A DNA stretch of 64,000 nt from positions 1-64,000 of the forward strand of contig MCFE01000311.1 of the NCBI GenBank assembly GCA_002104905.1, written 5' to 3'. This DNA is from Basidiobolus meristosporus CBS 931.73. Lineage: Eukaryota; Fungi; Basidiobolomycota. Below, in pieces: positions 1-20,242 of the stretch; within the stretch, counting starts at the first letter, position 1; the number at the start of each line of letters is the position of its first letter. The position numbers and the translations under genes were made by a program. The notes under the pieces were generated by a model, which did not search any database, was not told the DNA's origin, and was given only the letters and a program-made list of their open reading frames with translations.

Positions 1-524
1 TTGCAGTCTGGTGCATTACATCCCTGGTGCCTCATCTGCCTGAATGCCCCTACAGACATGCTATTCTTGATGCTTTTGGGATTATGCCCTACAAGATCAG
101 ACTACTCTACCTTAGAACCAGATTATATTTCAGACCTTACTACTGCAACAACCCACTGATCAAGGCCTGGAAGAGAACACACCACACTACACCTGGCTCC
201 TGCTGGAGAACTATACTTGGAGATCCTGAAGTCAAGAAGCTTGCTCAATATATTCTGCAGTCAGAAAAGCCCAAGCTGGCCTACCTGAATTACTTGACAG
301 ACCTTTGGCAGCAATATCTGAAGCAGCACACTCCCTTTATGATGAATATCAATCCTTATCACATTCCCCTCATTAATGTTGTTCACAAGTCATTCTTACC
401 TCTCTTGCTACCCCCCTTCCCACTGAACAGTGTCTTGAGCACTGAAGAACTATCATCACTTCTTGTTAACTTACCTACAAGCTCCCCTCAGCTACACACT
501 CTTGTATCAAAGCTACAACAGTAG
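1..524 (+). mobile_element. Probable 3' remnant of a non-LTR (LINE-like) retrotransposon ORF2
   Basis: ORF 27-524 (AILDAFGIMPYKIRLLYLRTRLYFR...NNPLIKAW) resembles the region C-terminal to LINE RT domains. The sequence is CpG-depleted and truncated by the window edge; no RT catalytic motif is visible. Confidence 0.35.
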
Positions 525-972
525 CGCTGGCTTCTTTGTTTCAGCAGAAATAAAGATTTCACCTGTTGGTGACTGTCTCCCCCCCCAATAACTTACTTCT
601 CGTATCAGGCAGCTAGAGTATAAAGCTGAAGACTCAGCCTCGGTGCGGGTCTATGCGATTGAGCTCATCTTTATCTCACAACTCACTAAGAAAAGGTGCA
701 CTAGGATGCTATAGTACTAGAGTACCAATTTAACTGCTGAAAATGGGTTTATGTAGTGTAGTGGAATGTCAGCCACAATTGGAAGTACTAATCTATAACC
801 AGATGGTGCTCCTTCTTTCTTGCGATGCCTTTATCTCAAATTTACAGCAAGCTGCCTCGTGGGGCAGATAGCTTCCCACCTTTTGCGACACCATACATCC
901 CCCACACATCATCACTGCTGGGCAAATCTTCCAACCGATTTATTGTAAGTAGCAATTCTCAGAGTCCAACGC

Positions 973-2251
973 TTACCCAGATGATGAAGACAGAGGAGAG
1001 GCTAAAGTTGAGGCCCCATGCTTTCTCTTTTTGCCCAATCTACCTGGAATCTGAAAAACAGCAGTGTAGCGGTGGCCTTTAGATTTGGATAGCACCGAAG
1101 TGGTTCCATGCTCATCGACGCATGGCCTCCAGAACCACAGCATATTGTGGCTGAGTGGCACTGCAACCTTGTATTTGGGGATAATGAAGTACTGCTCTTC
1201 GGTATCGCCATCAAGGAAGCATACGCCTATAGCATATTGTGACTTGTCCTTATCAACATGAATCTTTGTGGAATAATCTTTTGTCGCGAAGAAGCTTGGG
1301 AGTGAGGTGTCCTTATGTAACAAAGGCATCTGATACTCCAATTGAATCTTTTGCCAATCTTGTTTCACATCGGGTAGAAACACATCTACGAAGCTCTGGA
1401 TTAACACTGCCAATGCCTCGGCGTTCTTCTGGATCTCGTTTATATGATCAACATCGGATTTCTTCAGGGATGGGATGCTGTAAAGAGAGATTCCGGACAT
1501 ATTCCCGCCCCGCGGGCTTCTATAGCCCACACCGAACATTTGACCGGTTATATACTTTGATTTTCGAATCAGATTATTCCGGTAGCCAGGAATGCTTCGC
1601 AATGTCTCCAAAGAGAAATCCGCTTGGTCTTTGGAGAACGGGTGCTGGATAACTCCGAATACAATGGCGTCGTTTTGCAGCAGAAAAGTGGTTCTCTCTA
1701 ATATCGTGAAGCTTTTTATATCCCGCATGTATATTTCGACATCCTCAAACTGAGAGCAAAAGGATCTAGCTTCAGAAATGGCAAATCGGCATTCGAAGTT
1801 GGTTAATCCCTACGGTTTAGAGGTTGTAAATACAGGGAAGAAGAAAACGCATATGTGTGTGTAAGGACGTCGGCGTACCTTGACAATCAGCCCTTTCCTG
1901 TGGAAGTTCATTTCTCTTACTTTGAACCTCTGGTAGGTGCCATATAAGATCCTCAGCTTCTGAATACCCGGAATATCTTGATACGTGGGGCTTCTCAATC
2001 GGTTGCTTAAGTAGTTGAAGATATGGGGCCTTTTGGAATCCTACAAAACTATTGGTGAGAAATGGAGTCGGTAGCATGACGTTTCTAGCGGAACCAACTT
2101 CGAGAGTAACGAACTGATTTGCAAACTCAAACAGTGGATGTTTATCAGTAAGCAAGGTGGCAAGGTGGGATGGATTGTTTTCAATCAACTCTACCAAGGA
2201 TGCAATCCACCTTCTCCAAGGTGCATAGCGATCTATCTTGGATTCGTTCAT
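973..2251 (-). CDS. TET/JBP-family 2-oxoglutarate/Fe(II) dioxygenase, 3 exons, about 383 aa
   Basis: Exons 2251-2099, 2040-1879 and 1809-973 join in frame across introns 2098-2041 (GTTGGT...TTTGTAG, 58 nt) and 1878-1810 (GTACGC...CTAAAC..CGTAG, 69 nt). The C-terminal domain has GQMFGVGYR, the Fe-binding HxD (KIHVDKD), distal His (DEHGTT) and 2OG-binding Arg (HRYTAVFQI) in TET/JBP order and spacing. Confidence 0.8.
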
Positions 2252-2923
2252 TACAGTGATAGTTGTGGGATCTGTTGGCTTTTAAGCTCACCTCGTTTCC
2301 ATGTTACATTCGATGGTCACAGTCATGGTTTGCAGGAGATGGTTTAAAAATTGAACGCGGATGGCGTAACTATGTTTTGGTAGGATCTTCTGGCCAATAG
2401 ATGGCCAGTAAAATTGCATATTGCGCTACACTCGAAATTGCGCTACAACCACACTGACTGTTTAATGGGAAGTGGAGTGACAGCTACCTCGCGCTTATCT
2501 AGACAGGCTGCGTGATGGCTCATTCTTTTGCTATTAATTACTTTTACGCGCCACTCCAATGATTTAATTTCACGACTTTGACTAGTTTCTCGGCTGCGGG
2601 ACCATGGAAATATAGTCTTTGAATATATGGAAGCCTCTCGGCTCCCATCGGCACAGAAAAATGATATATTGTTGGAGATATATATGGTCATTATTGGAGG
2701 ATATTGCAGCAAATTATGATTCATCGCTACCGGGAAATCCAACCATCATATTAAAGTCTGTGCGGATGGGAAGCCCGAAATCCGCCCATACATCGTGATT
2801 GGCGTAATCGCGCTATGGTTGGAAAATTGGTAGATTTCCCTGCACCAATAGACACCACCCCCATCACTTTCCGATTATGGCAATGCGGAGAAAGGAAGAG
2901 CTTGAAACTACCACATCATTGAA

Positions 2924-3760
2924 TCAAAGATTAAGGTTGGGAATAACCAGTGGGAAGTAGTAACGCAGAACTTGATTCACCTGCTGCGTCATCTGCCCAT
3001 TGAAATCTATGATCTTCTTTCCTAATCCAGCAGAAAGTATATTACCAATCTCAGTCCTAATTAGTGCCCAGGAGGTGAACACAGTTTCGGGAAAAAGAAT
3101 AGCAGTAATACAGCTATGCACATTCTATGTGGTTGATTTCTTAAATCTCCATTGATTGCACTTTCGTTCCTAACCGCACAAGTAAGATGCGTAGTTGCAT
3201 ATACGGGAATTGCGCCACAAATACGCATCCAATTCCACATTGTTGGGTAATTAGCATCTACTCAGAAAATGCTCGAGGATAGAGACAAGAAATCGGTGAT
3301 TTATCTGTATATGCGTTTGTATTCCCGCAATATGCATCCAAGTAAATACTAACCTGACACCCTTGAAACATAACGTAACTTATAACTGTACCTATAGCTC
3401 TAGTCATACTAACTGGATCTCGGCATTAGTTTACTTCCATGAATAACCTTTACATCCGCCATCGCATGTCAATAACATGCGATATTTGAGTGCTCAACCA
3501 TGAATTGTAAACATGCTCTTGGTTGCTTTGTGTGTTTCAAGATTCATGGTTGGGCAGCTCCGGCTGCTAATGCAAATTGTAGCTGTTATTATTGTTTGGG
3601 TTGTTGCTCTACTTGAAGTTAAATGGATATGCCAACTCCAAGAATGAGCTAATATCTTACAAACTTGATCTCTAGCTGATTTAGGTGCTAGCAATGGGCT
3701 ACATAGGATCCAAAGGTACATGGGCAGTTTCAGTGTAAACTAGATAATCACAACAGATAC
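2924..3760 (-). pseudogene. Possible decayed multi-exon gene of unknown family upstream of the TET/JBP gene
   Basis: An intron-like segment (GTTAGG...CACATAG) joins ...PTMWNWMRICGAIPVYATTHLTCA in frame to NVHSCITAILFPETVF...PNLNL*. Upstream frames are protein-like but interrupted by TAG/TAA/TGA. Confidence 0.25.
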
Positions 3761-3799
3761 AAGCTACCTCTAGAGCTATGAGCAATACCATATTTGTAA

Positions 3800-6200
3800 T
3801 CATAGCGGGGGTGAAATGCATTCCTGGATCTGATTTAAAATCATATAGTTGGTAGATCCAATATGATATTTTACTTGGGTGTTGGCTACTATTGGATGCA
3901 ATTGCCCATTAGTTTTGTAAGCATTAGATATGTGATCATTCTCATTTCCTGTTTGACCGGATTCTAGTTAGGAAATGAATTGCGCCAGCTGATTGTCAAG
4001 AATTAGTTATTCAAACCGGTAGTTGATCCTGATTGGGAAGAGTCTCAAGATACATTTCTACTAAGATCGTAAGGTATATAGTAGCGACAGTCAGGTTGTA
4101 GCTGCTATAGGAGTATAGAGGAGGATCAAGAGGCAACATTATTTTTCTAGCCAACCTATATGTAGGGCATGATGCAAATCTTACATTTGCACTCGAATGT
4201 TGACACTAATCTAGTCAACAAAACCCTGCTCTGAACCTTGCTGATTCCAGCTCAAATTCATGCAGTTGATCTTGTACTTATATAGAAATATCTATTCAGC
4301 TACTCATTTGTATCATACCTAGCAGCTTTATTATCTCTGGCCCAGACTCTTTTGATGACTCAGCTGATAGACTTCCACCAGTATAGCAAGTACCCAGAGC
4401 ATGAAAGTTCTCAAAGCTTATATAAGCTTTAAGTTTATTCAAATGCTGTCAAGACCCTTTTAGCTGTATACTCTCTTCTCTATGTTGCCAATACCCTATT
4501 GAAGATATACCATTTTGCATCCAATAAGTCTCTGAGTGATAACTATATAAGGTGCTTGCCCTCACAGCAACATCAAACATAATCAGGAGACTGATGATAA
4601 CTATTTATTAAGATATGTATAAAGCAGCTTTATCAGTACTCTAGATACTGACGGCAATCAGACTCTCAAAGTTGACTAAATACCTTGAAAATCTCAAACT
4701 TGGAACTCATCTAACTTTCAGCTGGTATTCTGATTGTATTTTGCTGATATGAGCTTGTGTTTTTCTTCCAAACTTTTAGTTGCAATTTTAGTGGAGGTAA
4801 TAAGCAGCTGATTATAAACTATGGTATGAATGCTAGTTGGCCTATTCTCCTGCTGAAAAATATATCTGCTTGTCTTCCTAAGAGCTAATACCTGAGATTC
4901 TGAGAGAGAGATGTCAGTTTTAAGAAACCTGGAATTCAGCAAATGATGGCATTATGCAGGCTTTCTTTTAATATTTTCTGTTAAGTAAAAGCTCATGGAC
5001 TTCATACATATACTCTGAGGAACCTTCTTAATGTATTAAACTTGCTTTAGCATACCATTCATCATTATGTCACATACCATTCTCTCAATTAGCTACATTG
5101 GGATAGTAAATAAGTCAGCTTTATCTTACTCTGGCACTTTACATTACTATATGAAGCTACATCACGCTGTTAGCACTCATTGGCACCATAAGTGTTACCC
5201 AGTAATATTACTTAAGTCAATTGACATAATATGTATTATTGATTTTCTTGTGTAGATTACTCAAGCAAGGGAATGGTCAAGGCATGATGTGTCTTAATTG
5301 TTAAAGTTATAGCATAAATGCAACAGTTCAAGTTTTATATGTACCACTCACAAGATGTTTGTTGGTGCTTTGTGTCAAGACTACTCTGTGCATGTTAATA
5401 TAGAAGTTTATTTTTCACTTTGAACTAAGTTATCTGATCAGTGTCTCAAGTATGCATAGGGCTTGCTACAAGTAGCTTTGCACTTGACCACTTGCAAACT
5501 AAAGCAAAGTTACAGCAAGATAATACTCAAGTATCACGCACCATGTATTATGCATGCCTCAAGAAAACATCACTATGCGTCCATAATGAAGTCCTAGTCA
5601 GTAATGTCAGAAATCTGGTGGACTGCATTGGGGATGACCCACAAAAAAACCGAAAAGGTCGTTTGCAAGTACTGAAACGCGGTTTTCGTTGCAGGTTCTT
5701 AACTGGACCTCAAGGCCATGCTGGGTTGTATAATTAAGACTGAATGTGTAGTAAAAGACATACTGTTGATGTGCACTATTTTTCTTTCATTTATATATGT
5801 AGGTAGAGTGCTTGAGAATCAAGTAAGACCTGAGGCAATAAGCTAATATATCCATAATTTGTATGCATTTCAATATACGACTGATCCTACTACTGATATA
5901 GCATTTGATTTTGCTTGGCTGGATGAGTGTATAAAATTGCTAGCGAGAAGGTAGAGTGAAGGCTAATACGCTAACAATGCATTTTCTTTTAGGCGATTGG
6001 GGAGAGGGCAGTATAATATGTAGTCAATGAAACAAGATGCAAAATTCCTAACCAAATATAACTCCATACACTTATTCCACGCTCATTGACCAACCCTCTG
6101 TCAAATCAGATGTAATGGAAAATCCCAGGTCCACTGATACGCTAGGTATTGCACTTTATGTACAGGAGTAGTTCTAAACTTGTGTATTTAGTGGCGAGTA
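3800..6200. other. AT-rich, CpG-depleted degenerate sequence, probably decayed transposon
   Basis: CpG is nearly absent, there is no long ORF, and composition matches the TE block after 38 kb. No family motif was recognised. Confidence 0.35.
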
Positions 6201-6344
6201 GCTGTGTAAGAATTCCCGATTGGATTGAACATGTTTGCTTAGACAAGCAATAAACTGGAGGTAATAAAGTACTGACAACTTTAACTATCATCTATTAGGA
6301 ATACATAATTCTGTAAGTGTTATATATTGATGTATGTTGGCTTC

Positions 6345-7625
6345 CTATTGGCAAGGTGTTTGCCCTTCTACATCACCTTGCTCTACTGTGCAAGTTTGGC
6401 TGTTACCGCCTTCCTCCCCTCCACTATTCGCTGCACCAGGGGTATTTTCCATTTCGGAGTCACTCGGTGGAAGGTCGCTACCACTAGCTTCAACCCTCTC
6501 ATTATTGACAGCATCATTAGGGCTGGCCTCAGGATATCCATCACCATTACTTTCACTACCAGCTTCGATATTACTACTTTCAGCACTAGTATCAGAATCA
6601 CTGGCCACGACATCCTCGCTCTTGGCGCCGGTATTCCCGTTTTCAGTACTAGTCTCAGGATATCCGCTATCGGGGTCGGCTCCAGTTTCTCCACTTGGGG
6701 TGCTCCCCTCAGTCTCTCCGCTTTCAGTGCTGCCCTCAGTATTTTCGACACTACCCTCTGTGTATTCGTTTTCGTCACTCTCTCTATCTACAGTCCGGTC
6801 ATCTGTATTCTCGGCCCCACTCTCCTCGGGACTTTCTTGGCTTTCTTCATCTTTCGAGGCGGGAGTAACTGGTTCATCATTTTCAGAACCAGTTTTGTAG
6901 TCACCTTCATTATCAGCACTATCGACACTGTCTTCAGCATCACTTTCAACGCTGTCACCATCTCCAGAATCGGATTTGCTTTCAACACTTCCATCAGAAA
7001 TATCATTCTTACTAGAGCCATAGGCGGTTGCCCCACCATCGTTATTTTGGCTGTCCGTCCCATCTTTGCCATGTCCTTGGTCTGGAGTATCGGGCTTCTT
7101 GGTATCATTACTGTTGTCTGTATCGGCGGCTTTGCTTTCTTCGTTGCTTGGGATACCGTCGCTAGTATTGGCTGCGTCATCCTTTTCGGACTCCGAGGTG
7201 TCTAGCTCCTTTCCACCGCTACCCTTACGACAACCCATACCATCGCCATTCGCATTGTCATCAGAGCTCGCACCAGCTCCAGAACTATACGAGTCGGCTT
7301 GGTTGCCATTTCCAGCATTGATACCAGTGGCACTCTTACCGCGACCCTCATCCTCCCCAGCTTTAGAGTCAATCCCATTGCTGTTGTCACTGTTTCCAGG
7401 CTCACCCCCAGAGCCCGGACTATTTTTCCCTACATCGTACACTCCCACACCACTTGGCTCGCTGGCGATACCTTTACCACCGCCATTGCTGTTCCCCACA
7501 TTGAAAATATCTATGATGTCGTAATCGCCGTTGCTTCTAAGCCGGATTCTTCGGTCTAAGGCTGCGGCGCGGATGACTGCCAACCCGGAAAGTAGGCATA
7601 GGACTTTGGAGGCTGCGAATCGCAT
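6345..7625 (-). CDS. Secreted, highly acidic low-complexity (Ser/Gly/Asp/Glu/Asn-rich) protein, 426 aa
   Basis: Hydrophobic signal peptide (MRFAASKVLCLLSGLAVIRAAA) followed by a dibasic RR, then a long acidic disordered region with EGS(T/V)E-like and GYPE(T/A)S repeats and a Cys-containing tail. Single exon. Confidence 0.75.
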   Translation of the reverse strand: MRFAASKVLCLLSGLAVIRAAALDRRIRLRSNGDYDIIDIFNVGNSNGGGKGIASEPSGVGVYDVGKNSPGSGGEPGNSDNSNGIDSKAGEDEGRGKSATGINAGNGNQADSYSSGAGASSDDNANGDGMGCRKGSGGKELDTSESEKDDAANTSDGIPSNEESKAADTDNSNDTKKPDTPDQGHGKDGTDSQNNDGGATAYGSSKNDISDGSVESKSDSGDGDSVESDAEDSVDSADNEGDYKTGSENDEPVTPASKDEESQESPEESGAENTDDRTVDRESDENEYTEGSVENTEGSTESGETEGSTPSGETGADPDSGYPETSTENGNTGAKSEDVVASDSDTSAESSNIEAGSESNGDGYPEASPNDAVNNERVEASGSDLPPSDSEMENTPGAANSGGEEGGNSQTCTVEQGDVEGQTPCQ

Positions 7626-8104: not shown

Positions 8105-10354
8105 TTACCAATCTAACTTTTTGGCCTTTTGTTTGGGGCTGGTGGTAGGCTTGATGGCCTTTCCGCTATACTCTTTGCCATCCAGCCATGGCCATTCGTT
8201 TGTTCTTTTCCCCTCGAACGCCTCGATCTTGTCACTCTTCTGCATGGTAAGCCCGATATCATCCAATCCATTGACAAGGCAGTGCTTGCGGAATGGCTCT
8301 ACGTCGAACTCTATTTCACCATCAGGGTGGCGAACAACCTGATTTACGAGGTCCACCTCGAGCTCAGCCCCTTGCCTTGCTGCTTCGGCCAGGGTATCTA
8401 CATCAGCTTGTGGAAGGACGACTGGAAGCATGCCGTTTTTGAATGTATTGTTGAAGAAGATATCTGCGAAACTGGTGGCGATAATGCAGCGAATCCCGAA
8501 GTCGTTGAATGCCCATGGTGCGTGTTCACGTGAGCTGCCACACCCAAAGTTAGGCCCTGTGCACACCAGGATCCGTGCTTGACGGTAAGGCTCCTGGTTC
8601 AACACGAAGCTTGGGTTTTCTTCCCCGGTGCTGGGATCGTAGCGGAGCGCGTAAAACAATGCGCTGCCAAGACCTGTGCGCTTGATCGTCTTCAGGAACT
8701 GCTTAGGAATGATCATGTCCGTGTCTACGTTGGAGATGTCTAGAGGAGCAGCGTAGCCCTTGAGTGTAGTGAACTTCGGCATCCCGGAAGCTGCAGGTGC
8801 CTGGCTACCAGTGGATGGGCTAGAGGCTGGCGCATCAGTGACCGGATCTGCTGCATCAGCGGCTTTTTCGTGGTTCTCGAATTGTGGTTCGATCACTTGA
8901 GGGGCGGAGGATTTTCTAGGCTGTGGCAAGTCGGCTGGAGTAAGCTTACGCACATCAGTGAGATAGCCTCTGATGCCAGCAGCAGCAGCCATGGCAGGGC
9001 TCATCAAGTGGGTACGCCCACCGGCACCTTGACGGCCTTCAAAGTTACGATTGCTGGTACTGGCACAACGCTCGCCAGGGCTTAACTGATCAGGATTCAT
9101 ACCCAAGCACATGGAACAGCCAGCCTCTCTCCAGTCGAAACCGGCTTCTTTGAAGACGGCGTCCAATCCTTCTCTTTCAGCTTGAAGCTTGACAAGACCG
9201 GATCCTGGGACAACCATGGCATAGACCCAGTCGGCAACATGGTGACCCTTCACAATCTGGGCTGCGCTTCTTAGATCCTCAATACGGGAGTTGGTGCAAC
9301 TGCCGATGAATACTTTGTCAATCTTGACTTCCTCCATTGGAGTGTTCGGCGCCAAGCCAATATAATCCAAGGCTCTTTCCATAGCAGCGCGCTTGGTGGG
9401 ATCTGAAACCTGGGCTGGATCGGGGACAACCCCGTCAATAGGGACCACATCCTGTGGACTGGTACCCCAGGTAATAGTGGGAGCAATGTCGGCAGCATCG
9501 ATCTCCACGTTGATATCGTACACGGCGTCAGGATCGGAGCGAAGTGTGCTCCAGTATTGAACCGCCCGATCCCATTCGTGGGCGTTCGGCGCTAGTGGCT
9601 TGCCACGAAGGTAAGCGAAGGTTATTTCATCGGGAGCAATCATACCAGCACGGGCACCTGCTTCGATCGCCATGTTACAAATAGACATTCTTGCTTCCAT
9701 CGACAATGCAGAGATGGCGGAGCCACAGAACTCGATGACACAGCCAGTACCACCGGCAGTGCCAATAACACCAATAGCATGAAGGACAATATCCTTGCTG
9801 GTGACACCAGGGGCAAGTTTCCCCTCGACCCGGATACGCATATTCTTCGACTTCTTTTGCAAGAGTGTCTGGGTGGCAAGGACATGCTCAACCTCTGAAG
9901 TACCGATACCAAAAGCAAGAGCACCGAAAGCACCATGTGTAGAGGTGTGGGAGTCACCGCAAACGACAGTGGTTGCTGGAAGGGTGAACCCTTGCTCAGG
10001 GCCAATAACATGTACAATACCCTGGCGGTTATCATCCATGCCGAAGTACGTCAATCCGAATTCCTTGACGTTGCTTTCCAGAGTCTCGCATTGTGTTCTT
10101 GAGTCGGCCTCATGAATGAACGTAGAAATATTCTTGAAGTTCTTGCGGTTGGTTGTAGGGATGTTGTGGTCCACGGTAGCAAGGGTACAGTCAACACGGC
10201 GAACACCACGACCGGCATTTCTCAACCCCTCGAAGGCCTGTGGGCTGGTGACTTCATGAACAAGGTGTCTATCGATGTAAATCAAGCAGGTTCCGTCTTC
10301 TTGGCGATCAACCACATGGTCGTCCCAAATTTTGTCGTAGAGAGTGCGGGGCAT
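8105..10354 (-). CDS. LEU1: 3-isopropylmalate dehydratase (fused LeuC-LeuD, fungal type)
   Basis: [69 protein letters not shown], then a linker and the small-subunit motifs [13 protein letters not shown] and [12 protein letters not shown] at 10354. Confidence 0.98.
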
Positions 10355-11041
10355 CAAGTTTGCTCGAGTGGTAGCGAAAGTTAACTATATATTTACAATA
10401 CAATCAATGAACTTGTAGAAAATAATGGTCTGGGGTTGCAGCTCACGGGCGAGCTTATATACACCCTCCGCCCCACTGATCTTATCATCATAACTATGAA
10501 TCATCCCACATCCAAGTGATACAGGACGAAAGCGTCCATTGACTCACATTGATGCATTAATAAGTCAATTCTCCCTTTCCACATCAGCTGATACCATTGA
10601 TCCTGACTGACCATATATGTTCGTGTGTTTCCATGTTAGGAGGCTTGCTCGACCTGCGTACTTGGGCTTGATGCACAATGTAATTAGAAATGATGACTGA
10701 AGTTCGTTTCGTCAGCCTCACCTGCCCTTTGAAGATCCCAACCCGACGCATCACCAAAGAAACCAACCAGCATGGGCGCTAGCGAAGGCAACCAACATGC
10801 GCCATACTGATGCTGATTAGATTTGCGGGCCAACGAAAGTATCCATTTGAGATACGGGCTAGGCGATATCCTAGATGAGACTCTCTGTGTAAGACATTGA
10901 CAAATAACATCTCCGGTGCAACCCCAAACACAAATACTGCATGCCATGCACCGTTTTGTTCACCATACTTCTTGGTTTAGATTATTGTTGCTTTATTGAA
11001 ACGTTGGAAATGATTTACATGCAGAGATAAATGGGGTATGT

Positions 11042-13379: not shown

Positions 13380-15091
13380 ATGGGGAAATCGTTCACTGCT
13401 GAAGATGTCAAGAAGCACAACACCGAAAACGACTGTTGGATCATTGTTCATGGCAAGGTAAAGATCCAAGTCGATGCTAACTAATGGTATACGCACGTGG
13501 CCCGACCCTAACCTCAATCCCTTCGCAATAGGTCTATGACCTTAGCAACTTCCTAAGCGAGCATCCAGGTGGCAAAAAGGTTGGTGTGGCTACTGCTTCC
13601 ATACGCCCAGCATTGTTGTGACCATTTGGAGTGTAGGTTCTGATTCGAGTGGCTGGCACTGATGCCTCAAAGCAGTTCGACAACTTCCACAACAAAGCGG
13701 TCCTTGACCAGTGGGGCCCGAAGCTTCTTGTTGGCAGCATCGGTGAAGCGGCAAGCTCGTCATCGAGTGAAGACAACACTACGTCATCCGAAGAGAACCC
13801 CGAGTATTTCGGAGAGCTGATACCATTCGGGGATCCATCCTGGTACTACGCACCCAGCCCCTACTACAATGACAGTCACAAGCGACTGAGAGCTGCACTC
13901 CGCAAGTTTGTTGACAAGGAGATCATGCCCTTTGCTCACGAGTGGGACGAGGCAAAGAAGATTCCTCAAGAGTTGTTCATCAAATTGGCGAAGGCGGGTA
14001 TTCTTTCGGCTGTGGTTGGTCATCCATATCCTACTGCATACGCGCCAACGAAAAATCTTATTGGCGACGTAACCCCGGAGGAGTTTGACCCATTCCACGA
14101 GTTCATTATTTGCGATGAAATCTCTCGATGCGGCAGTGGTGGTGTATTGTGGGGTTTGATAGGCGGCTTGGGGATTGGACTGCCACCCATCCTCAACTTT
14201 GGATCTGAGGAACTAAAGCAAAAGGTTGTACCTGGTTGCCTATCAGGAGAGAAGTTCATCTGCCTAGCCATCACTGAGCCATATGCTGGTAGTGATGTAG
14301 CCAACCTCCGGTGCGAAGCGAAGCTTACTGACGATGGAAAGCACTACATTGTCAACGGAGAGAAGAAATGGATCACCAATGGAGTTTGGGCGGACTACTT
14401 CACCGTGGCTGTGAGAACTGGTGGAGAGGGGATGGGAGGAGTGTCACTATTGCTGGTCGAGCGCACCATGCCTGGTGTGAAGACGAGGCAAATGCAGTGC
14501 TCGGGGGTGTGGTGCTCTGGAACATCCTACATCACATTTGAGGATGTCAAGGTGCCGAAGAGTAATCTAATTGGTGAAGAAAATAGGGGATTTAAGCATA
14601 TCATGCATAATTTTAACCACGAACGCATAGTCAGCACAACCCAAGCATTACGGTTCTCACGTGTTTGTCTTGAGGAATCCATCAAGTACGCCAACAAGCG
14701 CAAGACTTTCGGTAAGAAGCTAATCGATCACCCAGTCATCCGTGACAAGTGTGCGAGAATGGCTGGTAAGATTGAGGCGGTGCATGCTTGGATGGAATCG
14801 CTGATCAACATGACGAAGGTGATGCCGCAGGATATGCAGATGGTCGCCCTTGGTGGGCCTATTGCACTACTTAAAGTACAGATCACTCAGACGTTTGAGT
14901 TCTGTGCTCGTGAGGCAGCGCAAATCTTTGGGGGTCTTTCCTACACTCGAGGTGGCCAAGGAGAGAAGATTGAGCGATTGTACCGCGAGGTGAGAGCCTT
15001 CGCCATTCCAGCTGGTTCGGAAGAAATCATGCTTGATTTGGGCATAAGACAAAGCGTCAAAGCGGCCAAAATGTTTGGTGCAAAGATGTAG
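13380..15091 (+). CDS. Cytochrome b5 domain-acyl-CoA dehydrogenase fusion, copy 1 (3 exons)
   Basis: Spliced N-terminus [26 protein letters not shown]|[16 protein letters not shown]|[14 protein letters not shown] contains the b5 HPGG motif. It is followed by ACAD motifs [22 protein letters not shown] and FNHER. Confidence 0.93.
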
Positions 15092-15406
15092 ATCGCTTCA
15101 CAACAGACCAATTTTGGGCGAAAGACCGAGGGCTGGTCCAATCCTTACAACCCTCTTCTACCTGTCCCCAGAGCAACCAACTGTGGCTCATGTTTATATG
15201 TAGTAAAGATACAATAAATCACGAGGATTTCGACAATTACAATTTTTGCCTCGAGGACAAAATTATGTAGAAACCAGACGAGAAACCAAAGTAAACAGTA
15301 CCGTTACTTAATGGTTAGGATTATTAAAGAGCACTTATCGGCCCTTGATTCGTTATTCTGAAAATAAGTAAGAACAAGGATAGTCACGAGTCAAACCCAA
15401 GCCAAC

Positions 15407-15532
15407 TCATGGTTTAGTATCGTCATCACGATAGTTACCAACGCCGAGATTGTCTTGGCTGCCATCAATATTCTCTTGAAAAGAGGCAGCGAGGTTGGGC
15501 ATCACATTAGGGGAACTAATGGCTCTAGACAT
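15407..15532 (-). pseudogene. Decayed 5' fragment of the AAT gene carried in the tandem-duplication unit
   Basis: Translates as ...NLAASFQENIDGSQDNLGVGNYRDDDTKP*, versus [33 protein letters not shown]. The adjacent GAATTCAATGGTC matches the AAT promoter near 12441-12455. Confidence 0.75.
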
Positions 15533-16142
15533 CTTGCAGTAGAGGGCTAAGAATTCAATGGTCTATTTCGAAAATTCCATAAGTGCCTCAAGCCACCAAG
15601 CAGGTACATTTATCAATCCTCATCATCCCAACCACAACCTAAATTGATAATCATTCATCATAGAGTAGTAGGCTGCTGACTGCTATCGGAAACTGTTGAT
15701 GCTAGGCGAAGAGGCTTGAAAACGAGTATTCCAGTCTGAGGCTAGGCTTGATTATTAAATAAACTATTTCAGATTTAGCAACATAGATTTAGTTCTGGGA
15801 TAACTTAGTACAACTGCATAACAGAGAACACTGACACGACAATTGCTATTCACGTAATACCACTCCTCCAACAAAATGACAATCACCCCCTTTTGTCTTG
15901 TATGAAGTCTTACACCTGACCTTCAATAATAATCGTTTACATAAGATACCCATGTGAAAATACAGTGGGCCCCCTCTGCTATTCACTGGCTACTATGCGT
16001 CTTAAAGTTAGAATGGATTCAAAAGGCTGGCCTGGTTCACGTGCGAATAGGACATAAGATATGTGATGACAATATAAAGCCTGCTCTTTCTCTTCAGCTC
16101 ACCAGCGTCCACTCTCACTCTCACCTTTCAGACATAACAACA

Positions 16143-17854
16143 ATGGGGAAATCGTTCACTGCTGAAGATGTCAAGAAGCACAACACCGAAAACGACTGTT
16201 GGATCATTGTTCATGGCAAGGTAAAGATCCAAGTCGATGCTAACTAATGGTATACGCACGTGGCCCGACCCTAACCTCAATCCCTTCGCAATAGGTCTAT
16301 GACCTTAGCAACTTCCTAAGCGAGCATCCAGGTGGCAAAAAGGTTGGTGTGGCTACTGCTTCCATACCCCCAGCATTGTTGTGACCATTTGGAGTGTAGG
16401 TTCTGATTCGAGTGGCTGGCACTGATGCCTCAAAGCAGTTCGACAACTTCCACAACAAAGCGGTCCTTGACCAGTGGGGCCCGAAGCTTCTTGTTGGCAG
16501 CATCGGTGAAGCGGCAAGCTCGCCATCGAGTGAAGACAACACTACGTCATCCGAAGAGAACCCCGAGTATTTCGGAGAGCTGATACCATTCGGGGATCCA
16601 TCCTGGTACTACGCACCCAGCCCCTACTACAATGACAGTCACAAGCGACTAAGAGCTGCACTCCGCAAGTTTGTTGACAAGGAGATCATGCCCTTTGCTC
16701 ACGAGTGGGACGAGGCAAAGAAGATTCCTCAAGAACTGTACCCCAAGTTAGCCAAGGTGGGTATTCTTTCGGCTGTGGTTGGTCATCCATATCCTACTGC
16801 GTACGCGCACACGAAAAATCTTATTGGCGACGTAACCCCGGAGGAGTTTGACCCATTCCACGAGTTCATTATTTGCGATGAAATCTCTCGATGTGGCAGT
16901 GGTGGTGTATTGTGGGGTTTGATGGGTGGCTTGGGGATTGGACTGCCACCCATCCTCAACTTTGGATCTGAGGAACTAAAGCAAAAGGTTGCACCTGGTT
17001 GCCTATCAGGAGAGAAGTTCATCTGCCTAGCCATCACTGAGCCATATGCTGGTAGTGATGTAGCCAACCTCCGATGCGAAGCGAAGCTTACTGACGATGG
17101 AAAGCACTACATTGTCAACGGAGAGAAGAAATGGATCACCAATGGAGTTTGGGCGGACTACTTCACCGTGGCTGTGAGAACTGGTGGAGAGGGGATGGGA
17201 GGAGTGTCACTATTGCTGGTCGAGCGCACCATGCCTGGTGTGAAGACGAGGCAAATGCAGTGCTCGGGGGTGTGGTGCTCTGGAACATCCTACATCACAT
17301 TTGAGGATGTCAAGGTGCCAAGGAGCAATCTAGTTGGTAAAGAAAACAAGGGATTCAAATACATCATGTACAACTTCAACCATGAACGCATGGGTATCGC
17401 AATCCAAGCATCACGATTCTCACGTGTTTGTCTTGAGGAATCCATCAAGTACGCCAACAAGCGCAAGACTTTCGGTAAGAAGCTGATCGATCACCCAGTC
17501 ATCCGTGACAAGTGTGCGAGAATGGCTGGTAAGATTGAGGCGGTGCATGCTTGGATGGAATCGCTGATCAACATGACGAAGGTGATGCCGAAGGACATGC
17601 AGATGGTTGCCCTTGGCGGGCCTATTGCGCTTCTCAAGGCGCAGTCTACTCAGACGTTTGAGTTCTGTGCTCGTGAGGCAGCGCAAATCTTTGGGGGTCT
17701 TTCCTACACTCGAGGTGGCCAAGGAGAGAAGATTGAGCGATTGTACCGCGAGGTGAGAGCCTACGCCATCCCAGGTGGTTCGGAAGAAATCATGCTCGAT
17801 TTGGGGATGAGACAGAGCCTTAAAGTGGCCGAAATGTTTGGTGCAAAGATGTAG
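16143..17854 (+). CDS. Cytochrome b5 domain-acyl-CoA dehydrogenase fusion, copy 2
   Basis: Same exon structure and near-identical sequence to copy 1; intact frame. Confidence 0.93.
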
Positions 17855-18530
17855 ATCGCCTCACAACAGACCAATTTTGGACGAAGGGCTAAGGAATAGG
17901 GTAATTCCTGCAACCCTCTTCTACCTGTCCCCAGAGCAACCAACTGTAGCTCATGTTTATATGTAGTAAAGATAAAATAAATCACCAGAATTTAACCCGT
18001 CATTTACCGACTCTCATTATTCTGACTTTTGGAGGCTGAATTCAACAACCAAACTTGACGAACCACTAATAACGTGACGTTTGGCCTTCAATAGATGATT
18101 AATGCTGCCTAATGCTTGGCCAAGATACACTCAGAACCTGAACGTAGAGTTTATTCTGATTTGCCGATATTTAGATTTGCTTTACGGATAACTTAATACA
18201 ACTGCATAACAGAGAACACTGACACGACAATTGCTATTCACGTAATACCACTCCTCCAACAAAATGACAATCACCCCCTTTTGTCTTGTATGAAGTCTTA
18301 CACCTGACCTTCAATAATAATCGTTTACATAAGATACCCATGTGAAAATACAGTGGGCCCCCTCTGCTATTCACTGGCCACTATGCGTCTTAAAGTTAGA
18401 ATGGATTCAAAAGGCTGGCCTGGTTCACGTGCGAATAGGATATAAGATATGTGATGACAATATAAAGCCTGCTCTTTCTCTTCAGCTCACCAGCGTCCAC
18501 TCTCACTCTCACCTTTCAGATATAACAACA

Positions 18531-20242
18531 ATGGGGAAATCGTTCACTGCTGAAGATGTCAAGAAGCACAACACCGAAAACGACTGTTGGATCATTGTTC
18601 ATGGCAAGGTAAAGATCCAAGTCGATGCTAACGAATGGTATACGCACGTGGCCCGACCCTAACCTCAATCCCTTCGCAATAGGTCTATGACCTTAGCAAC
18701 TTCCTAAGCGAGCATCCAGGTGGCAAAAAGGTTGGTGTGGCTACTGCTTCCATACGCCCAGCATTGTTGTGACCATTTGGAGTGTAGGTTCTGATTCGAG
18801 TGGCTGGCACTGATGCCTCAAAGCAGTTCGACAACTTCCACAACAAAGCGGTCCTTGACCAGTGGGGCCCGAAGCTTCTTGTTGGCAGCATCGGTGAAGC
18901 GGCAAGCTCGTCATCGAGTGAAGACAACACTACGTCATCCGAAGAGAACCCCGAGTATTTCGGAGAGCTGATACCATTCGGGGATCCATCCTGGTACTAC
19001 GCACCCAGCCCCTACTACAATGACAGTCACAAGCGACTGAGAGCTGCACTCCGCAAGTTTGTTGACAAGGAGATCATGCCCTTTGCTCACGAGTGGGACG
19101 AGGCAAAGAAGATTCCTCAAGAGTTGTTCATCAAATTGGCGAAGGCGGGTATTCTTTCGGCTGTGGTTGGTCATCCATATCCTACTGCATACGCGCACAC
19201 GAAAAATCTTATTGGCGACGTAACCCCGGAGGAGTTTGACCCATTCCACGAGTTCATTGTCTGTGATGAAATCTCTCGATGCGGCAGTGGTGGTGTATTG
19301 TGGGGTTTGGTGGGTGGCTTGGGGATTGGACTGCCACCCATCCTCAACTTTGGATCTGAGGAACTAAAGCAAAAGGTTGCACCTGGTTGCCTATCAGGAG
19401 AGAAGTTCATCTGCCTAGCCATCACTGAGCCATATGCTGGTAGTGATGTAGCCAACCTCCGGTGCGAAGCGAAGCTTACTGACGATGGAAAGCACTACAT
19501 TGTCAACGGAGAGAAGAAATGGATCACCAATGGAGTTTGGGCGGACTACTTCACCGTTGCTGTGAGAACTGGTGGAGAGGGGATGGGAGGAGTGTCACTA
19601 TTGCTGGTCGAGCGCACCATGCCTGGTGTGAAGACGAGGCAAATGCAGTGCTCGGGGGTGTGGTGCTCTGGAACATCCTACATCACATTTGAGGATGTCA
19701 AGGTGCCAAGGAGCAATCTAGTTGGTAAAGAAAACAAGGGATTCAAATACATCATGTACAACTTCAACCATGAACGCATGGGTATCGCAATCCAAGCATC
19801 ACGATTCTCACGTGTTTGTCTTGAGGAATCCATCAAGTACGCCAACAAGCGCAAGACTTTCGGTAAGAAGCTGATCGATCACCCAGTCATCCGTGACAAG
19901 TGTGCGAGAATGGCTGGTAAGATTGAGGCGGTGCATGCTTGGATGGAATCGCTGATCAACATGACGAAGGTGATGCCGAAGGACATGCAGATGGTTGCCC
20001 TTGGCGGGCCTATTGCGCTTCTCAAGGCGCAGTCTACTCAGACGTTTGAGTTCTGTGCTCGTGAGGCAGCGCAAATCTTTGGGGGTCTTTCCTACACTCG
20101 AGGTGGCCAAGGAGAGAAGATTGAGCGATTGTACCGCGAGGTGAGAGCCTACGCCATCCCAGGTGGTTCGGAAGAAATCATGCTCGATTTGGGGATGAGA
20201 CAGAGCCTTAAAGTGGCCGAAATGTTTGGTGCAAAGATGTAG
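18531..20242 (+). CDS. Cytochrome b5 domain-acyl-CoA dehydrogenase fusion, copy 3
   Basis: Same exon structure; promoter and 3' half match copy 2, while several 5' variants match copy 1. Confidence 0.93.

Follow-up and report, generated by a model that had tools for sequence, protein, structure and literature searches.

A three-exon gene in Basidiobolus meristosporus

Within the window (the whole 64,000-nt stretch of Basidiobolus meristosporus CBS 931.73 DNA that was analysed) we found a real, intact three-exon gene encoding a TET/JBP-type enzyme, on the minus strand, with exons at 2251..2099, 2040..1879 and 1809..973. When 2098..2041 and 1878..1810 are removed from the reverse complement of 2251..973, a single open frame results, exactly 383 aa long, in line with the original prediction of three fragments joined into about 383 aa through two GT..AG introns. 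Exon 1 (2099..2251, minus strand; ATG at 2251; 51 aa, residues 1-51) has a dN/dS of 0.31 against the paralogue L002 and is predicted by AlphaFold, at low confidence, to be helical. It is followed by a putative 58-nt intron (2041..2098, minus strand; GTTGGT...TTGTAG), whose GT..AG ends and 58-nt length are kept in L002. The GTTGGT donor had been described as shared with the ACAD genes of the window, and it is indeed found, with a ~57-nt intron ending in TGTAG, just upstream of each of the three tandem ACAD ORFs (13580, 16343, 18731). Exon 2 (1879..2040, minus strand) encodes 54 aa (residues 52-105), and the putative intron 2 (1810..1878, minus strand; 69 nt, GTACGC...CCGTAG, phase 0) contains an in-frame stop when read through, at which the ORF 1817..2251 terminates. 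Exon 3 (973..1809, minus strand; 278 aa, residues 106-383, stop at 975..973) carries the entire TET/JBP catalytic domain. The host is an early-diverging fungus, as had been supposed (Basidiobolus, Zoopagomycota). The gene had also been called hidden, which it is not: the locus is in GenBank and UniProt with PF20515 (hypothetical protein K493DRAFT_303872 in GenBank, with a different N-terminal exon model), and the UniRef name of the paralogue begins 'Tet-like 2'.

Splicing at both introns is probable, and the case for the junctions rests on paralogue divergence (31-38% in introns, 6-15% in exons), since no RNA run holding the locus was found among the sequencing runs matched by the 1.9-kb stretch or by the gene alone. 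The two runs that contain the locus (X1 and X2) are DNA, with an even depth of ~140 across exons, introns and spacers, and their long contigs show zero differences from it. Exon 1 is 13% diverged from L002, and exon 2 15% and 6% in its two parts, while intron 1 reaches 31% and intron 2, which also has indels, 38%; the introns exceed the pooled exons 1 and 2 with Fisher p 0.001 (intron 1) and 5e-6 (intron 2). With identical junctions, each of the three copies in the genome yields an intact frame of 383 aa. The JGI exon models of these copies are mutually inconsistent, the acceptor of intron 2 being common to all three, and one of them (P0003, for the 98%-identical copy) uses exactly both proposed junctions. 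P0003 has in addition an in-frame 117-nt 'intron' (1167..1051), which we rejected, as it would remove H339 and R352; we likewise rejected P0001, which requires a 28-nt intron, and P0002, which takes as intron a stretch of 51 nt with 94% conservation. That stretch, the last 51 nt of exon 2, cannot be an intron because its divergence from L002 is just 6%. A second open frame, that of exon 1, also runs through exon 2, and the two frames were separated neither by dN/dS against L002 (0.34 vs 0.45), nor by codon-usage log-odds (-1.4 vs +2.7, not favouring the proposed frame), nor by substitutions by codon position (5/8/7). The contig with the B. ranarum orthologue begins within exon 3 and is uninformative on the 5' exons.

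The genome's proteins include three copies, namely two diverged loci and one 98% copy. The paralogue L002 has 77% DNA identity, and exon 3 compared with it gives a dN/dS of 0.10 over 810 nt (dS 0.67), showing that purifying selection has acted strongly ever since the duplication, which is old. By blastn, positions 995-3037 and 3052-3106 of the window match L002 at 77-78%, so that the duplicated unit of 2.1 kb comprises the gene and ~850 bp upstream, its second copy lying at an unrelated locus. The co-duplicated upstream DNA (2252..3106, minus strand), a promoter or 5' UTR region, has about 55-80% identity with indels and no shared ORF.

The N-terminal 105 aa are lineage-specific, and nothing found in them supports the targeting module that had been suggested for the first 130 aa. 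They have no Pfam match, and a word-index search with residues 1-110 returned only the three B. meristosporus proteins and no homologue outside the species. Searching three alternative N-termini with phmmer against all distant relatives gave noise only, and a feature-based search of the region gave scores of at most 0.72, which we regard as a lead only. In a full-length AlphaFold run (on P0003) residues 1-105 reached a pLDDT of 32-58, with no confident fold.

Catalytic motifs and fold

The four motifs listed in the original prediction are all present. In GQMFGVGYR (1519..1545, minus strand; residues 194-202), G200 is kept in 24 of the 27 relatives and R202 in 18 of them; the motif closes strand 88-97 of the AlphaFold model, ahead of a helical insert, and this topology makes R202 a candidate equivalent of TET2 R1261, CMD1 R244 and CcTet R205. 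In those enzymes this arginine, on the N-terminal side, both binds the co-substrate and stacks against the base. The predicted iron ligands H289 and D291 of the HVD motif (1252..1260, minus strand; residues 289-291; H in 26/27 relatives, D in 25/27) align in HMMER with CMD1 H345 and D347, and H339-G-T341 (1102..1110, minus strand), whose histidine is the predicted distal iron ligand (26/27 relatives), aligns with CMD1 H397-G-T399. In R352-Y-T354-A-V-F-Q358-I (1048..1071, minus strand; residues 352-359) the arginine, kept in 23/27 relatives and aligned with CMD1 R410, is a candidate for binding the C5-carboxylate of 2OG, as do TET2 R1896 and NgTET1 R289. The iron triad and an arginine after the distal histidine are common to this protein and to TET2, NgTET1 and CcTet, whereas its N-terminal 105 aa are unrelated to theirs and it has neither the Cys-rich domain nor the low-complexity insert of TET2. 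Near the C-terminus, the basic cluster KKRK (1021..1032, minus strand; residues 365-368) resembles a nuclear localisation signal and may mediate nuclear import; it is present in both B. meristosporus copies, and its B. ranarum counterpart is GKKRT.

Membership of the protein in the TET/JBP superfamily is well supported. Exon 3 matches Pfam PF20515 (2OG-FeII_Oxy_6, Tet-like, mainly Basidiomycota) with an E of 3.8e-7 and 30.8 bits against a cut-off of 27, which makes it a marginal member, and 10 of 17 relatives match it as well, while the score for PF12851 (Tet_JBP) is 12.9 bits, under the cut-off of 34.9. A HMMER profile of 27 relatives, compared with solved structures, reached CMD1 (7cy4) with an E of 6.1e-10, gap-free across HxD, HGT and R; CMD1 was the sole match, TET2, NgTET1 and CcTet having none at the sequence level up to E 10. 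The relatives are sparse, coming from the chytrid Geranomyces, from the amoebozoan Planoprotostelium and, as short contigs, from metagenomes and public sequencing runs, and a profile search with a 17-sequence alignment gained no further ones.

In the AlphaFold model of the catalytic domain (pLDDT 78, pTM 0.79), residues ~150-365 adopt the TET-type double-stranded beta-helix. The top 26 chains in a Foldseek search of the PDB are all CcTet, TET2, NgTET1 or CMD1, with CcTet first (E 2.9e-10). VIA-align gave Z scores of 19.4-19.8 for TET2, 17.1-17.9 for CMD1, 16.9-17.7 for NgTET1 and 16.1-16.6 for CcTet, clear of the other 2OG oxygenases, of which FTO came next (Z 13.9), followed by PHD/PHD2 and AlkB (at most 13.7). 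A best structural match in a non-nucleic-acid 2OG oxygenase family, which would have spoken against the assignment, was therefore not what we found, since TET-type chains lead. Among Swiss-Prot predicted structures JBP2, JBP1 and NgTet1 rank first (JBP E 1e-10 to 3e-8, TM 0.55-0.64), and the fold also matches rust proteins named 'Tet-like 2OG-Fe(II) oxygenase domain-containing'.

Base-contact positions and substrate

To map the positions that contact the base we used spacing in the sequence together with the HMMER alignment, and took the reference residues from PMC7854593 and PMC11040006. Five residues after the HxD histidine (H+5) lies K294, where TET2 has N, NgTET1 and CMD1 have D and CcTet has G. 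At R+6 the four solved enzymes share a base-stacking Tyr or Phe, which is replaced by Q358, and at R+8 their His or Arg is replaced by P360. The canonical 5mC-contact set (Asn/Asp at H+5, an aromatic residue at R+6, His/Arg at R+8) is thus absent, and the family consensus at these positions is R/K, Q/T/S and T/S/P. Within the clade, the residue at H+5 is not constant (R 11, E 4, K 3, D 2, N 2), and for that reason it may not determine specificity. The role in erasing 5mC or 6mA that had been put forward is an assumption, and neither base is established as substrate, because the protein has other residues at these three contact positions, which every solved TET-type enzyme shares.

The likeliest substrate would be 5-methylcytosine, which we infer from the DNMT1- and Dim-2-type methyltransferases of B. 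meristosporus and from the CpG-depleted repeats adjoining the gene. The supplement of PMC10538959 includes DNMT1-like ORX99839 and Dim-2-like ORX84408 and ORX98566 in its DNMT trees, and the observed/expected ratio of CpG is 0.00-0.22 in the flanking repeats versus 0.6-1.0 in the gene.

Function and rival explanations

We consider it highly probable that this is a functional low-copy host gene, whose 383-aa product is an Fe(II)-dependent TET/JBP dioxygenase most likely using 2OG. Iron would be held by the H289-x-D291...H339 triad and the distal carboxylate of 2OG at R352-x-T354, as in TET enzymes. After entering the nucleus by means of the C-terminal KKRK cluster, the enzyme would flip a methylated base from duplex DNA into its active site and hydroxylate the methyl group via a ferryl intermediate. 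CMD1, the closest solved relative by sequence, takes ascorbate and not 2OG as co-substrate, which counts against the use of 2OG. A CMD1-like enzyme, transferring a glyceryl group from ascorbate onto 5mC (5gmC), would fit with CMD1 (Chlamydomonas reinhardtii; PDB 7cy4-7cy8; fold match Z 17-18) being the only solved structure that the profile reached. It would also fit with the spacing from H339 to R352 (+13), which equals that from H397 to R410 in CMD1, and with T341 matching T399; Asp stands at H+4 in both proteins. We nonetheless hold such an activity to be improbable, for the signature pair W358 and Asp350 of CMD1 is aligned with C302 and K294 here. W358 blocks the C5-carboxylate site of 2OG, and a Trp is found at that position in just 5/27 relatives; D350 reads N4 of 5mC, and CMD1 F416 and R418 are likewise replaced, by Gln and Pro (PMC7854593). 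CMD1 is also longer (532 aa vs 383 aa), and identity to it is 12-17%. A protein with the same fold could otherwise act on another base or by another reaction, as a JBP-like enzyme turning T into 5hmU, a 6mA demethylase or an RNA-base oxygenase, the replaced contacts K294, Q358 and P360 then reflecting a different substrate. JBP2 and JBP1 precede NgTet1 among the Swiss-Prot models (E 1e-10, TM up to 0.64), and a basic residue at H+5 could hydrogen-bond carbonyl O4, which Asp cannot, as can be gathered from the remark on T docking in PMC7854593. This is unlikely in our view, given the variable H+5 column and the fact that CcTet binds 5mC with non-canonical residues (PMC11040006). Moreover, the kinetoplastid thymine dioxygenases JBP1 and JBP2 are proteins of 810-1100 aa with a J-DNA-binding or SNF2 helicase domain and no sequence-level match seen to ours, none of whose exons gives a further Pfam match.

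The surroundings bear on whether the gene belongs to the host at all. It is flanked by CpG-depleted, ORF-poor DNA on one side and by a very high-copy repeat at 1-586 on the other. Together with the copying of a 2.1-kb unit to an unrelated locus and the fold match to the rust 'Tet-like' proteins, this would be compatible with a transposon-borne TET gene, or its relic, that shields a mobile element from 5mC silencing, as with the KDZ-, Helitron- and hAT-linked TETs. We rejected a transposon link, and give it little probability, as neither a transposase nor element termini were found. There is no intact transposase gene in 2300-6300, because that interval holds no ORF of at least 100 aa; the adjoining 426-aa ORF has no Pfam match, none of the called genes up to 6 kb from either locus (L001, L002) has a transposase Pfam family, and the duplicated unit is not bordered by terminal inverted repeats. 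Two diverged loci and one 98% copy do not amount to an expansion, and the low dN/dS suits a host gene. That the three-exon frame arose by chance in a decaying or mis-assembled pseudogene is very improbable indeed. The three conflicting JGI models and the second open frame of exon 2, with a codon usage that does not favour the proposed one, would agree with it, but the frame is intact in 3/3 copies, exon 3 is under the constraint described above, every catalytic residue is kept, and DNA coverage is even with zero differences in long contigs.

Returning to a functional host gene, the known fungal TET/JBP genes offer a contrast. The study of PMC12730594 spans Basidiomycota and Pezizomycetes, with genes carried on transposons (KDZ, Helitron, hAT and others), and contains zero occurrences of Basidiobolus or Zoopagomycota; unlike those genes, the Basidiobolus gene has neither an adjoining transposase nor an expanded copy number. 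A Zoopagomycota host with such a low-copy gene under purifying selection, without adjacent transposase and beside DNMT1- and Dim-2-type methyltransferases, would be a simple system in which to ask whether early-diverging fungi actively oxidise methylated bases, and the altered base contacts turn substrate specificity into a concrete, testable question. We tentatively hypothesise, while thinking it rather doubtful, that the genes of Basidiobolus group with their few relatives in a TET/JBP subfamily of their own, nearest in sequence to CMD1. With its base pocket rebuilt (basic at H+5, without a stacking aromatic at R+6), this subfamily would accordingly produce, in early-diverging fungi, a DNA modification distinct from 5hmC, such as 5hmU made from thymine or oxidised 6mA. 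The Rhizophagus methylome paper (PMC8298701) describes 6mA as abundant in early-diverging fungi. A smaller, practical gain is that three public predictions in mutual conflict can be replaced by a corrected exon model.

Family membership and copies of the TET gene

The three-exon TET gene on the minus strand of the window (2251..973) encodes a protein whose membership of the TET/JBP group is solid. For exon 3 (1809..976, 278 aa, stop codon at 975..973) we found a match to the Pfam family PF20515 (Tet-like 2OG-Fe(II) oxygenase) with an E-value of 3.8e-7 (30.8 bits, cut-off 27), and only 12.9 bits against PF12851 (Tet_JBP). All the motifs on which the original prediction had based the family assignment are present in the product, namely GQMFGVGYR (194-202), HVD (289-291), HGT (339-341) and RYTAVFQI (352-359). 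In the 27-sequence family alignment the catalytic residues are kept in most members (H289 in 26/27, D291 in 25/27, H339 in 26/27 and R352 in 23/27), and when the 27-relative profile was searched against solved structures with HMMER it gave one sequence match, the algal CMD1 (E 6.1e-10), with an alignment that is gap-free over HxD, HGT and the Arg that comes next. Exon 3 was also modelled with AlphaFold from the alignment of relatives (pLDDT 78, pTM 0.79, with 88-95 in the catalytic-motif blocks); in a Foldseek search of the PDB with this model, the first 26 positions all went to CcTet, TET2, NgTET1 and CMD1. VIA-align Z scores were 19.4-19.8 for TET2, 17.1-17.9 for CMD1, 16.9-17.7 for NgTET1 and 16.1-16.6 for CcTet, the next-ranked folds being FTO (13.9) and, lower, PHD/AlkB. 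Among Swiss-Prot models JBP2, JBP1 and NgTet1 ranked first, and the matches among AlphaFold clusters included rust 'Tet-like' proteins and animal TETs. The best structural matches are thus TET-type, and not a 2OG oxygenase family acting on something other than nucleic acids.

The gene had been proposed to be hidden, which is wrong. The exon 3 protein matches with 100% identity the hypothetical protein K493DRAFT_303872 of B. meristosporus CBS 931.73 (P0001, 393 aa, with a precomputed PF20515 assignment), and three more Basidiobolus proteins were found: P0002 (K493DRAFT_295613, 86% identical; its UniRef name starts 'Tet-like 2'), P0003 (K493DRAFT_363281) and P0004, a B. ranarum fragment. Automatic annotation therefore already ties this family to a Tet-like Pfam family. 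The host is indeed an early-diverging fungus, as had been suggested, and the gene is a new TET/JBP member in a fungal phylum outside the coverage of PMC12730594, where Basidiobolus and Zoopagomycota are not mentioned. Searched exhaustively with HMMER, a set of 1.84 billion representatives yielded just 23 relatives at E <=1e-3, among them proteins of the chytrid Geranomyces, one of the amoebozoan Planoprotostelium and sequences on short contigs of metagenomes or public sequencing runs; 10 of the 17 aligned sequences, counting the query and its paralogue, also match PF20515. The best non-Basidiobolus match in the representative search, P0005 (SRR5664280, 1422 aa), aligns to the HGT...R segment (query residues 215-255) 14 times over, at separate places; a fragment repeated in tandem or an artefact of assembly could account for this.

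In B. meristosporus the TET gene occurs at two loci that have diverged from each other, with one additional copy at 98% identity. This copy (L001, on MCFE01000871) is 98% identical over window 595-4273 and 94% beyond, differs from the TET gene of the window by 14 substitutions and 0 indels, and is a recent duplicate or haplotig. The diverged locus (L002, on MCFE01000010) is 77% identical over window 995-3037, with unrelated genes around it. Between the window copy and L002, dS is 0.67 and dN 0.066 across 810 nt of exon 3 (dN/dS 0.10), which indicates strong purifying selection on both copies since an old duplication. In exons 1 and 2 (window 1879-2251) synonymous divergence from L002 is lower, about 0.30 compared with 0.67 in exon 3; gene conversion in the 5' part or an additional constraint could explain this. 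A C-terminal KKRK cluster, retained in the paralogue and replaced by GKKRT in B. ranarum, looks like a putative nuclear localisation signal.

Exon models and the N-terminal region

Splicing the window sequence reproduced the predicted length of about 383 aa and the two proposed junctions, with exon 1 at 2251..2099 (51 aa), a predicted intron 1 at 2098..2041 (58 nt, GTTGGT...TTGTAG), exon 2 at 2040..1879 (54 aa) and a predicted phase 0 intron 2 at 1878..1810 (69 nt, GTACGC...CCGTAG) joining exon 3 in a single open frame. The public JGI models for the three copies are mutually inconsistent. P0001, at the window locus, and P0002 both leave intron 1 unspliced. P0001 mends the frame with a 28-nt intron, and is disfavoured for needing it; P0002 omits about 120 nt further on, among them the final 51 nt of exon 2, which are 94% conserved. 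P0003 uses exactly the two junctions of the original prediction and adds an in-frame 117-nt 'intron' (1167..1051). These junctions leave an intact 383-aa frame in all three of the window copy, L001 and L002. Divergence from L002 is 13% in exon 1, 31% in intron 1, 15% in the first 111 nt of exon 2, 6% in its last 51 nt, 38% with indels in intron 2, and 48% in the 5' flank. Both introns are more diverged than exons 1 and 2 pooled (Fisher p: intron 1, 0.001; intron 2, 5e-6), and intron 2 is more diverged than the final 51 nt of exon 2 (p 3e-5). Since a P0002-type model puts a 94%-conserved stretch into an intron and P0001 requires a 28-nt one, the three-exon model is the most parsimonious and, judged from the genomic sequence, quite probably correct. 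In both paralogues the frame of exon 1 likewise stays open through exon 2, and substitution phase, dN/dS and codon usage did not separate the two frames. A search for sequencing runs containing the locus listed no RNA run, and X1 and X2, which do contain it, are DNA runs.

The extra segment removed in P0003 (window 1051-1167, minus strand; GTTGCA...TTTCAG) corresponds to residues 320-358, and so takes in both H339 and R352. There is no defect there in the copy's own DNA, and the 'intron' is either an annotation artefact or the mark of a catalytically dead isoform. The GTTGGT donor had also been attributed to the ACAD genes, three tandem near-identical 480-aa ORFs (13649..15091, 16412..17854 and 18800..20242, within window 13580-20242), and a GTTGGT...TGTAG segment resembling an intron, about 57 nt long, does lie upstream of each (13580, 16343, 18731).

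Exons 1 and 2 had no Pfam match and no relatives outside B. meristosporus, and whichever exon model was used, no similarity could be detected between this N-terminus and those of distant relatives. In a full-length model on P0003 these two exons are predicted as helices, with a pLDDT of only 32-58.

Chemistry and candidate substrates

The iron triad and R352-x-T354 would be compatible with an ordinary Fe(II)/2OG reaction. In CMD1, W358 is part of what keeps 2OG out (PMC7854593). Its counterpart in the alignment is C302 here, evidence against a CMD1-type reaction with ascorbate, although 5 of 27 relatives have a Trp in that column. Base-pocket positions were mapped at the sequence level, from the HMMER alignment to CMD1, which is gap-free, and from a spacing that is constant across all four solved enzymes. 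Five residues after the HxD histidine (H289) these have N1387 (TET2), D234 (NgTET1), D350 (CMD1) and G331 (CcTet); six after the arginine (R352) Y1902, F295, F416 and F391; and eight after it H1904, H297, R418 and R393, in the same order (PMC7854593; PMC11040006). The TET gene product differs from all four, with K294, Q358 and P360, and the consensus of the 27-sequence alignment is R/K, Q/T/S and T/S/P at these positions. The predicted base pocket is thus non-canonical.

We rank 5mC first, as the most likely candidate substrate; B. meristosporus encodes DNMT1-like and Dim-2-like methyltransferases (supplement trees, PMC10538959), and the repeats flanking the gene have hardly any CpG left. Thymine, in a JBP-like reaction, 6mA or another substrate is possible. 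Of the original prediction, then, the TET/JBP identity holds and the hidden status does not, while a role as a 5mC or 6mA eraser and an N-terminal targeting module are unproven.

Genomic surroundings

The fungal TET/JBP genes of PMC12730594, from Basidiomycota and Pezizomycetes, are carried by DNA transposons. No transposase family was found among the called genes within 6 kb of L001 or L002, no terminal inverted repeats were found on the duplicated unit of about 2.1 kb, and copy number is low, so we set a transposon-borne origin aside and treat the TET gene as a host gene. Window 2300-6300 has no ORF of at least 100 aa, shorter ones there being outside the Pfam scan. The neighbouring 426-aa ORF (6345-7625, minus strand) has no Pfam match; it lies between the TET locus and the next gene, an aconitase-family dehydratase (LeuC/LeuD-type, 8105..10357), and at the matching place L001 has a 429-aa called gene, also with no Pfam family.

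CpG observed/expected is 0.00-0.22, with TpG/CpA in excess, in window 3501-5500 and 1-500, and 0.6-1.0 in the TET gene and 1.2 kb upstream. The depletion in the flanking repeats is consistent with 5mC-driven decay. Window 1-586 is a very high-copy repeat with a CpG observed/expected of 0.00, a summed contig depth of 460,000-860,000 in X1 and X2 (about 140 in adjoining single-copy DNA) and thousands of matching contigs, many with loose ends starting at 584-586 with TAACC(C)-like letters; a 165-aa ORF inside it (27..524) has only a sub-threshold Pfam match. A 282-bp stretch (window 4274-4555) is missing from L001, and the joined form (4273>4556) accounts for roughly a third of the depth of the DNA reads at that place, so both forms, with and without the 282 bp, are present in the sequenced culture.
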